Assembly (NCBI GenBank): GCA_013115145.1
Contig: JAAPAO010000312.1
Coordinates: 1 to 40,504 of the forward strand
DNA length: 40,504 nt
Reading direction: 5' to 3'
From: Perkinsus chesapeaki ATCC PRA-425
Taxonomy: Eukaryota; Protista; Perkinsozoa
This document shows positions 1-3,542 of this stretch, piece by piece. Under the pieces are notes generated by a model that saw only the letters and a list, made by a program, of their open reading frames with translations, was not told where the DNA came from and made no database searches. The translations under genes were made by a program, and so were the position numbers. Numbering within the stretch: position 1 is the first letter of the stretch; every line of letters begins with the position of its first letter.

Positions 1-293
1 CACTTAAACTATGTCCATTTGCATGTAAGTATTCTTCCCCACCAAGACCCCCAGTTATAGACTTCTGAGAGCGGCTTAAGGTTTGGGTATCACCAAGGGG
101 CCCACTGTAGTTTGTAGACGGGCACAGCATGACACAATGCGTGTTTCCCTTCATGTGAGAATAAAATCTGTACGCACGCGGAACGTGACATACGTATAAA
201 GCGCGCGCCGCTGTCACCGCCGAAATGTGGGATACTCTTTGACAAAGCGAATCTCTGATACAATGCAACAATTAAAATATATCATATTATAAG

Positions 294-1203: not shown

Positions 1204-1749
1204 TCACATGAAGACTAGAACTGCAGCTCCCAAACAATTAAAGAAATATACCGTAACAAGGGCCACATACAACACTTCACCTGGGGAAGAACCGTATATT
1301 GGCAGTGTGATACTTGGCCGCGAAGAGAGACCCATCCATGACAAATACCCATTCCTCAACGTACTATCCTTTAGAGTTTATCAACTTCACCTCCTCACGT
1401 TACGTGAGTCACGTAGCTCCTTGACGGCGTCGCTGTCGCCCAAGCCAGGCTTTACCTCGTTTGCTTCAACGAACCACAGACTCGAGTTGATTATTGGGCA
1501 AGTAAACGGGTGAAGTACAGTTGTTGAAAGACGAACAAGTTGTGATTCATCGATACGTGTGGTCAGAAGCCATCGTGGTGTTCGTATGAACTCATATCAA
1601 AGGCTGACAGCAATTTGAATCCTTCCCTGGAATAATGGTAACGCCGGAAGTAGCATTATCCACATCAGAGGCAACAATTATAGGACCATGCCACATGGCT
1701 CGTGAGTCCACTTTGTAGAGCAGCAAATACCAGGATAAGGACTAAACAT
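1204..1749 (-). pseudogene. Decayed coding sequence, candidate processed pseudogene
   Basis: Protein-like open segments sit in different frames: YKVDSRAMWHGPIIVASDVDNATSGVTIIPGKDSNC; YEFIRTPRWLL...SLWFVEANEVKPGLGDSDAVKELR; EEVKLINSKG*YVEEWVFVMDGSLFAAKYHTANIRFFPR*. They are joined by frameshifts and in-frame TAG/TGA. An ATG at 1749 lies 2 nt after an SL-like 22-mer. No family recognised. Confidence 0.4.
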
Positions 1750-1751
1750 CA

Positions 1752-1773
1752 CTTGAGCCAGAATGGATACAAA
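1752..1773 (-). other. Relict spliced-leader (DinoSL/Perkinsus SL)-like sequence
   Basis: Minus strand reads TTTGTATCCATTCTGGCTCAAG versus DinoSL DCCGTAGCCATTTTGGCTCAAG: 18/22 identical, 17/19 over the 3' part. It is followed by TG-ATG rather than the GT of an SL RNA gene. Confidence 0.6.
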
Positions 1774-2170
1774 TGCTTATAGATAATTAACATCTTACAA
1801 CTTCTCAGGTATCAAGGAAGGAGGGTGAGTTGGGGAACTCAAGCTCACAACTGAACAAAGGTGAGCAACTTTTTACCTTGCTGGGTAAGATCTCAAATAA
1901 CTCGACTAAGTCAGTAAACTTGCTCCTCGACCAGTCTCAGCTTTTACCGACTCATTTAACTCACGGTATGTTACTGATTCGTAAAGATGATGAAAATGTA
2001 CTTCCTAACTCACTTCACGCCCTCGCTTCAAAGTCGGTCGACGGCACAGTTTTATGGCAACTGCAATGAACTCAACATTCTTCAACAATAAGTTGCAAAG
2101 TGAACACAGCAATTAAACATCAGCCGGCTCAGCAGCAGCAGCAGCAGTGCAATCGATAATCAGAATTTGT

Positions 2171-3353
2171 CTACTGATGATACTCCTCTGTTGTGATAGG
2201 TTGCTCTGAGGCGACAGGTGTGAATGGTGAGAAAGATACCGAAGGCTCCTCGCCCTCACCGCCATCGCCGAACTAAACAACATATCCGAATAGGTTCATA
2301 TGCTCCAACTACATGAGGACGTATCTTTCGAAAAACTTAGCATTCATGTCAAAGCGAGATATGGCCATGTAAAGTGGCAAGAAATTCGTTCTTCCTGAAC
2401 TGATATTTTATGCAACCTAGTCCACGAACTATCGGTTCGTAGTGTTCGGAGAAATATGAAATACATTCTTTTTGGGTTGAGCCTTTAGAGTTCCTCTATC
2501 ACTGCCTGCGGCTTACACTGCCCCCCCAACTGGTTCGTCTTAGAAATGTCGCGGTTAGTTCCTGATGACGCTCGTCTTGAACAGCTGATCCATTCACCTA
2601 ATGAGTTATCGATGCCTAATGAATGGTACTACCACTCCTCCTCTTCTTCCTACTTTAAAATAATACACTAATGTGATAACACCTGTACCCGTCATATATA
2701 TACCAGAAATCACACAGAAGAATGCCCAAAAGCTAAACACATCAAAATAAGAATCCAGTAGTACAGCTTCAGCTTCGAGGAGCGTACGTTGAATTGACCC
2801 TTATAGAAGTAGACGACGACGATTGTCCAAGAAATCGACTGCCGCCGGCTGCATCCAAGTTCCCTTCCTCGGCACTTGTCGCCACATAAGTGTAATTGCC
2901 GCTGCATATCATGCCAAAAATCTGCAAGAGCGCCGTAAATGTTGAAACGGACCATGACCTACTATAAATACGAGAGCTCGGCCCAGCAAGGATGTCATAA
3001 AGGGAGCCACTGCTCTGAGCCTCTTCTGCGCTGGGGAGTCTTGAGGACTGATAAATAACATTATAGGGCGAATGAGAGGGATCGATTAATACCACAGTTG
3101 AGCGATGAGTCCCGAGGCTCCCAAACTAGCACATACACACGTCTCGGCCATGTTGTGTATCAGCATCCAAATACAGTACTGAGGGCACAGCAGATACCTG
3201 AAAATAATAAGATTATAAAAAAGGGAGTTTTTATTACGACAGTGAGTGAGCACATAACATAATGCAAGCTCCACAGCCTGTGAAAGGAAGGATGCTTTCC
3301 ACCACTTGGACAACCCTAAGTACTGAGAACGAAGGCAATATAAGCCAGTTCAT
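2171..3353 (-). CDS. Hypothetical multi-exon protein, possibly secreted
   Basis: ATG 3353 gives MNWLILPSFSVLRVVQVVES (signal-like). Exon-like segments are VSAVPSVLYLDADTQHGRD, the ORF-track SSRLPSAEEAQ...GGSRFLG, FLPLYMAISRFDMNAKFFERY and FGDGGEGEEPSVSF...EEYHQ* (last intron 48 nt, phase 0). Not all junctions were resolved. Confidence 0.35.
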
Positions 3354-3542
3354 TGCTTGGGTACTCAGCTGAACGCTGAACCTTGCAGAAGCAAAGATTA
3401 TAATATACTGAAATTAGACTACGTATTTCAACCGAATATGGATCTTGCAAGGTTGAAACTAAGATACCCCCGACAATAACAACCCAACACCTCTACACTC
3501 TCTTGGATAGTCTCACTTCCAATGAAAAATTAGGTAAATCAT

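Follow-up and report, generated by a model that had tools for sequence, protein, structure and literature searches.

The window analysed here, i.e., the whole stretch of 40,504 nucleotides, corresponds to the first 40.5 kb of contig C2318 in an assembly of Perkinsus chesapeaki that comprises 41.7 Mb in 3,544 contigs, and this assembly was searched throughout. On the minus strand, a conserved RRM-like gene (5299-4292) lies upstream of a second gene on the same strand (gene A, 2171..3409), which encodes a small membrane-like protein conserved in Perkinsus and was delimited by cDNA joints and exon-wise tblastx. Compared exon by exon, the coding part of gene A extends from 3353 to the stop codon at 2173-2171, with both the C-terminus and the stop being conserved, and contains three cDNA-proven introns of 40-45 nt at about 3237-3198, 3092-3048, and 2962-2922 (cDNA joints 3194/3235, 3047/3093, and 2921/2963). 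Still on the same strand and ~400 nt downstream of the gene A stop, a spliced-leader-like 22-mer is found (1752..1773), which is the sole leader-like site within the window. Beyond it lie the stretch that the original prediction had taken for a decayed gene (1204..1749, minus strand) and, at the very start of the contig, a short repeat of 73 nt (1..73) that also occurs on contig C1348 (50122-50201, ~98% identity over ~78 nt). Rfam and tRNA scans of the window returned nothing. Towards the other end, between 28000 and 40504, the G+C content falls from ~43% to 28-34%, which is unusual in comparison with the rest of the window.

Both P. olseni and a second Perkinsus contig show synteny for gene A and the RRM-like gene; for a neighbouring gene, the closest orthologue from a named species is that of P. 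olseni, at 70% amino-acid identity. At both of these loci, a convergent Rad51-like gene follows ~120-150 nt after gene A (L039:13072-13193); in the assembly studied here, the Rad51-like orthologue is located on contig C404 (2409-3029), without overlap with the window. Both tblastx and blastn similarity stop at 2210, and the segment 1..2170 is missing from the syntenic site of both P. olseni and the second Perkinsus contig. This segment of at least 2.2 kb is either lineage-specific or the result of a rearrangement. It begins ~400 nt upstream of the 22-mer and is far larger than the putative copy discussed below. The start of the contig at the edge of the 73-nt repeat is probably an assembly break, and given that the contig ends at this repeat, the boundaries of the non-syntenic segment cannot be fixed.

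Read on the minus strand from 1773 to 1752, the 22-mer is TTTGTATCCATTCTGGCTCAAG and is followed by TG and then ATG, not by GT, just as had been described from the sequence. The leader of this genome, ACCGTAGCCATCTTGGCTCAAG, is the L-type leader of Perkinsus marinus (PMC3101222), and its 19-nt core, GTAGCCATCTTGGCTCAAG, occurs in 32 exact copies genome-wide. The 21-nt S-type leader is absent from the assembly and was rejected as the source of the 22-mer. Compared with the genome's own leader, the core of the 22-mer (1770-1752, GTATCCATTCTGGCTCAAG) is identical at 16 of 19 positions. The 17 of 19 matches to DinoSL initially reported could be reproduced; however, the appropriate yardstick is the genome's own leader, against which there are three mismatches in 19 rather than two. 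The central dinucleotide of the leader accounts for two of the three mismatches, and the last 9 nt at the 3' end (TGGCTCAAG) match exactly. The leader centre is variable across Dinozoa, where it reads TTTT, TCTT, or TCT (PMC9399869), and among the leader-derived copies of this genome the central dinucleotide variants are CC, AT, GC, and GT; a "TC" variant was found nowhere else in the genome by the free-centre pattern search described below. The "AUUCUGG" printed in PMC3101222 conflicts with the leader given in that paper and with its "TCTT", and was taken as a misprint. At the 5' end, the 22-mer has TTT where the leader has ACC, with none of the three bases matching, and the resemblance begins at G4 of the leader. 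Since a start at G4 is common among non-gene copies whose upstream flanks are unrelated, the missing first three bases are not evidence against a leader origin.

The locus is transcribed. Its parts are present at 100% identity in four small 454 libraries made by RT-PCR, which derive from two samples of one marine metatranscriptome study. In cDNA contigs from these libraries, CCGTAGCCATTTTGGCTCA, the DinoSL primer, is found attached to minus-strand sequence at four sites. Two of them are AG acceptors located between gene A and the 22-mer: a distal one (1974..1975), supported by runs X2 and X3 (the same sample), whose contigs continue gap-free from 1975 to 1633 and 1559, and a proximal one (1851..1852, ctttgttcAG), seen in a contig of run X1 (the second sample) that continues gap-free from 1852 to 1527. 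The other two, likewise on the minus strand and each defined by a cDNA contig, are the leader acceptor of gene A (3409/3408) and an acceptor in the region of the RRM-like gene (about 5850/5849, joint 5851/5849). At each of the four junctions the final aligned bases are AG, and a pyrimidine-rich tract precedes the acceptors at 1975, 1852, and 3409. Given that the genomic sequence agrees with the primer's own 3' end over these two or three bases only, the junctions reflect trans-splicing and not mispriming. Taken together, the three contigs (0 differences) define a trans-spliced, cis-unspliced RNA body (1527..1973, minus strand) in which the 22-mer sits in sense orientation, 77 or 200 nt from the RNA 5' end. 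A new leader is thus added at the two upstream acceptors, 1974 and 1851, and the old leader-like sequence is kept in the mature RNA. Since the contigs with a leader upstream run unspliced through the 22-mer, it is internal to a currently trans-spliced RNA, as a relict would be, and it is not intronic in those cDNAs, which are assembled contigs rather than reads, stem from a single study in which either acceptor is documented by one sample only, and would miss rare spliced forms.

Resemblance to a leader can also arise by chance, when ordinary sequence, be it non-coding or leader, comes to look like a spliced leader by accident, and a genome scanned window by window entails heavy multiple testing. 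Allowing up to three mismatches, the genome's own 19-mer gives 91 genomic matches (32 exact, nine with one, 19 with two, and 31 with three mismatches) versus eight for the reversed-pattern control and 8.4 under a uniform expectation. The flanks of every inexact match were examined in order to remove repeat families, after which ~14 single-copy (orphan) matches with three mismatches are left versus ~8 expected by chance. By this strict orphan count alone, the odds that the 22-mer is fortuitous would be roughly even, and the lack of flanking integration marks around it (see below) also speaks for chance. However, the placement of two mismatches exactly on the known variable dinucleotide, with the 3' 9 nt intact, speaks against it, as does a search with the centre left free (GTAGCCATNNTGGCTCAAG, at most one other mismatch), which gave 52 matches versus 0 in the controls (uniform expectation ~0.25). 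The 22-mer is one of ~6 orphans in that search, a count which was discounted, as the free positions had been picked partly post hoc. Relative to controls, leader-like sites are in excess with the partly post hoc free-centre pattern and close to background when strict orphans are counted. Position offers a further argument: across the 6 kb that were examined, just ~6% of strand positions fall within 200 nt downstream of a mapped acceptor, so that a sense match 77-200 nt behind the mapped acceptors would be an unlikely accident, and the location of the 22-mer is independent support for a leader origin. With these points weighed, we regard a chance resemblance as unlikely.

A leader-derived sequence could, in turn, be what is left of a retroelement that carried a leader (an old solo LTR or truncated element, for instance), and not of a cellular mRNA. 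Most other leader copies in this genome are located in LTR retrotransposons or multi-copy repeat families. Leader pairs ~6 kb apart are found in direct terminal repeats of 200-430 nt, with the LTRs being 99-100% identical, and four complete LTR retrotransposons were delimited (L103, C8:400-7600; L104, C919:21300-29000; L105, C2061:25100-31800; L106, C61:1-6927). An exact leader, oriented like the long internal ORFs, is present in each of their LTRs; two of the elements have a single ORF (1,857 and 2,027 aa), the other two have several ORFs of ~260-660 aa, and the ORF that was scanned, the one of 2,027 aa in L104, carries Pao-type peptidase and integrase domains. Many of the genome's exact leader copies belong to these elements. 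The window locus is like them in that a leader would have become fixed in DNA via an RNA intermediate; furthermore, the host segment resembles an insertion, and a repeat marks the break of the contig. However, positions 1-2300 of the window show no blastn or tblastx similarity to the four complete elements or to ~95 leader-bearing loci, no LTR pair or gag-pol remnant was found at the locus, the region is single-copy both by DNA and by protein, and no terminal or inverted repeats bound it. A retroelement fragment is, in our view, an improbable source of the 22-mer.

Several other classes of leader copies are present in this genome. At L075 (C739:1645-1663) and L026 (C3036:22410-22428), the same 5' UTR and ATG follow different leader variants, with unrelated upstream flanks, which is direct evidence of leader-capped RNAs being copied into this genome. 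The same arrangement is seen for L097 and L009, where a common downstream 5' UTR and ATG stand once behind a variant and once behind the canonical leader, again with unrelated flanks. Each pair represents retro-copies of one RNA that had been trans-spliced with different leaders. Leader-RNA genes were identified as well: at L010 and L024 the leader is followed by GTAAATATCCGGTCC..., and L077 (C796:357-375) is a variant leader-RNA gene with GTAGCCTATTTGGCTCAAG followed by GTAAATATCAGG. The introns of L010 and L024 resemble those of P. marinus, judging from the 3'-RACE primers in PMC3101222. The "SL-like" families of Zhang et al. also occur here (AAG-ATCTTAG... and AAG-GTCTCAGTGTAC...). In addition, TTTGTGGTGAAAACACACGATTTTT stands behind a diverged leader (GTTGCCATGCTGGCTCAAG or variants of it) in a repeat family that comprises at least 10-14 copies; its members are L054, L059, L071, L072, L081, L083, L090, L093, L094, and L096, with L055, L057, L060, and L089 being more distant. 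A tandem array with a 59-nt period (L062, C2799:30602-31038) has a unit that contains the leader-like GTAGTCAT(C/A)TTGGCTCAAC.

The original prediction held that the 22-mer stands directly ahead of a protein gene decayed into shifting frames, i.e., a processed pseudogene formed by the recycling of a trans-spliced mRNA. The frames of 1204-1749 are indeed broken by stops, as claimed, but the protein signal within them is no better than that of shuffled sequence. The longest stop-free piece has 69 codons, a length that half of the dinucleotide shuffles reach (fraction 0.50), and the number of stop-free pieces of at least 40 codons is reached by a fraction of 0.40; for comparison, a real gene within the window has a stop-free piece of 472 codons. 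The codon-usage score has a mean z of ~0.9 and a best window at z ~2, from a small training set that makes it weakly discriminating. Overall, this single-copy stretch is indistinguishable from non-coding sequence. The signal-peptide-like reading proposed for its beginning requires an invented one-base deletion.

A parent copy was likewise sought. DNA searches of 1100-2100 and 1-1100 against the assembly gave self-matches only, apart from the 73-nt repeat at the contig start, and six-frame protein searches with the pieces of 69, 57, and 49 aa at E values up to 10 gave self-matches only, in an assembly that may be incomplete. With a leader divergence of ~16%, a surviving parent copy would have been readily found. 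The intron-containing parent that the pseudogene reading had envisaged is therefore not present among the sequences searched, which counts against that reading by its own terms. An exhaustive phmmer search of the 69-aa piece against 1.84 billion proteins gave no informative homologue. Two bacterial-type repeat proteins obtained in that search were rejected as spurious, as their score sums several repeats on the same query stretch of ~20 residues. Neither of the two integration marks suggested at the outset was seen: between 2100 and the contig end at 1, the minus strand has no run of six or more A and no A-rich 20-mer that could be a poly(A) remnant, in a contig that ends 1.75 kb downstream of the 22-mer, so that a longer copy may extend past its end, and no target-site duplication was found. 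Besides the 19-mer, the locus carries no mark of an integration event, and there is no indication of a protein gene ever having stood behind the 22-mer. With no coding signal, parent, poly(A), or informative homologue, the processed pseudogene of a protein gene is not supported.

A related possibility is that the relict belongs to a functional protein-coding retrogene, lying in a long 5' UTR or first exon with the coding exons located downstream or past the contig start. In its favour, the RNA is trans-spliced as mRNAs are, the contig ends 1.5 kb past the last cDNA base, the introns of this locus are short enough (40-45 nt) that small exons could be hidden between them, and by codon usage a 117-nt interval directly behind the 22-mer reaches the score of a weak gene. 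Against it, at least 320-450 nt of the RNA are unspliced and contain several short upstream ORFs: translation from the earliest ATGs of the RNA stops after 14, 23, and 34 aa, and no ORF beyond these was found within ~500 nt downstream of the 22-mer. In addition, the open frames across 1973-1 equal those of shuffles, and no homologue exists in the syntenic Perkinsus loci or in the organism's own genome. We therefore consider a functional retrogene very improbable. Hardly credible, finally, is a 22-mer within the intron of an intact gene or in a dead spliced-leader RNA gene, since the GT and AG boundaries of a 57-nt intron that surround it (GTAAGA..TTTAG, 1798-1742) are crossed gap-free by all three cDNA contigs, from the same libraries in which the gene A introns were removed, and taking this intron out yields no ORF, while the leader-RNA genes and variants that do occur in the genome (L010, L024, and L077) have a GT donor and a conserved intron (GTAAATATC.GGTCC...), neither of which follows the 22-mer.

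By one route or another, the 22-mer is probably derived from a leader. Its descent is suggested by the 16/19 identity, by mismatches in the variable centre, by a similarity that sets in at G4 as in many other copies, and by a sense position in leader-carrying cDNAs from two samples; the copying of leader-capped RNAs into this genome also speaks for it, as does the fact that two other Perkinsus genomes lack segment 1-2170 at the syntenic site. Against such a descent stands the fact that the 22-mer is an orphan with three mismatches, a class in which about half of the members are expected by chance, and that the first three bases of the leader are not matched. On balance, we favour the interpretation that it is the decayed leader of a reverse-transcribed, leader-capped RNA, now embedded in a trans-spliced, apparently non-coding, lineage-specific transcript. 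Under this interpretation, a leader-bearing RNA would have been reverse-transcribed and integrated, or its cDNA would have recombined into the locus, and the insertion would have landed ~400 nt past the stop of a conserved gene, on the same strand. The old leader, no longer needed once a new one was added upstream, might then have drifted, including a G-to-T change at the leader-internal AG. In dinoflagellate relicts, the leader-internal AG is often re-used as acceptor, and its loss here may account for the use of the upstream acceptors.

The RNA after the 22-mer has no detectable protein-coding capacity, judged by the absence of a signal, and the locus behaves as a lineage-specific, trans-spliced, probably non-coding transcript and not as a recognisable pseudogene of a protein gene. 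The RNA that was copied could have been a cellular mRNA, a non-coding RNA, or the RNA of a retroelement. What stands of the original idea of a retro-integrated, trans-spliced mRNA is therefore a probably leader-derived sequence in sense orientation and without a GT donor; the decayed protein gene behind it does not.

Relict spliced leaders and recycled cDNAs are said to have been recognised in dinoflagellates by Slamovits and Keeling in 2008. Genome-wide, such relicts were mapped in Symbiodinium (PMC5585692). Like them, the 22-mer is encoded in the genome, lies in sense inside an mRNA-like transcript downstream of a functional leader, retains at least 9 nt of exact leader sequence, and is not followed by the leader-RNA intron. 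Unlike them, it is found in a perkinsid, and it lies 77-200 nt behind the new leader, whereas the distance in dinoflagellates is 0-30 nt. Moreover, it has not been truncated at the internal AG (here changed to AT), no ORF follows it, it has no parent copy, and it is more decayed than is typical. Closer to the present case, P. marinus has genomic PmaSL copies without the leader-RNA intron, some of them ahead of protein-coding sequences, which the authors explain by leader-bearing mRNA having been reverse-transcribed (Zhang et al. 2011, PMC3101222). The genus and the 22-nt L-type leader are the same; however, the P. marinus copies are mostly exact, multi-copy, and tandem, whereas the 22-mer is a diverged single-copy orphan for which cDNAs document re-trans-splicing upstream. 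Given that relict leaders have already been published for P. marinus (PMC3101222 sections 16 and 22; PMC6050394) and for dinoflagellates (PMC5585692), the class is known and the 22-mer is a weak further member of it.

For annotation of this contig, the mapped acceptors and introns are of direct use, in particular for gene A and the RRM-like gene. The locus also calls for caution: as most leader copies in this genome lie in retrotransposons or repeats, and orphan near-matches are close to chance, a leader-like tag alone is insufficient to identify a processed pseudogene. In dinoflagellates, relict leaders are the standard tag of RNA-mediated duplication, and relict leaders in Perkinsus push this process back to the common ancestor; to these, the present locus adds one example that is backed by cDNAs but is decayed and non-coding. 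More speculatively, a leader-capped RNA may have been retro-integrated between convergent conserved genes, picked up by read-through and new acceptors, and in this way born as a lineage-specific, trans-spliced non-coding RNA. We put this forward only as a tentative scenario, which, if true, would represent a cDNA-documented perkinsid case of leader recycling seeding new transcription units.
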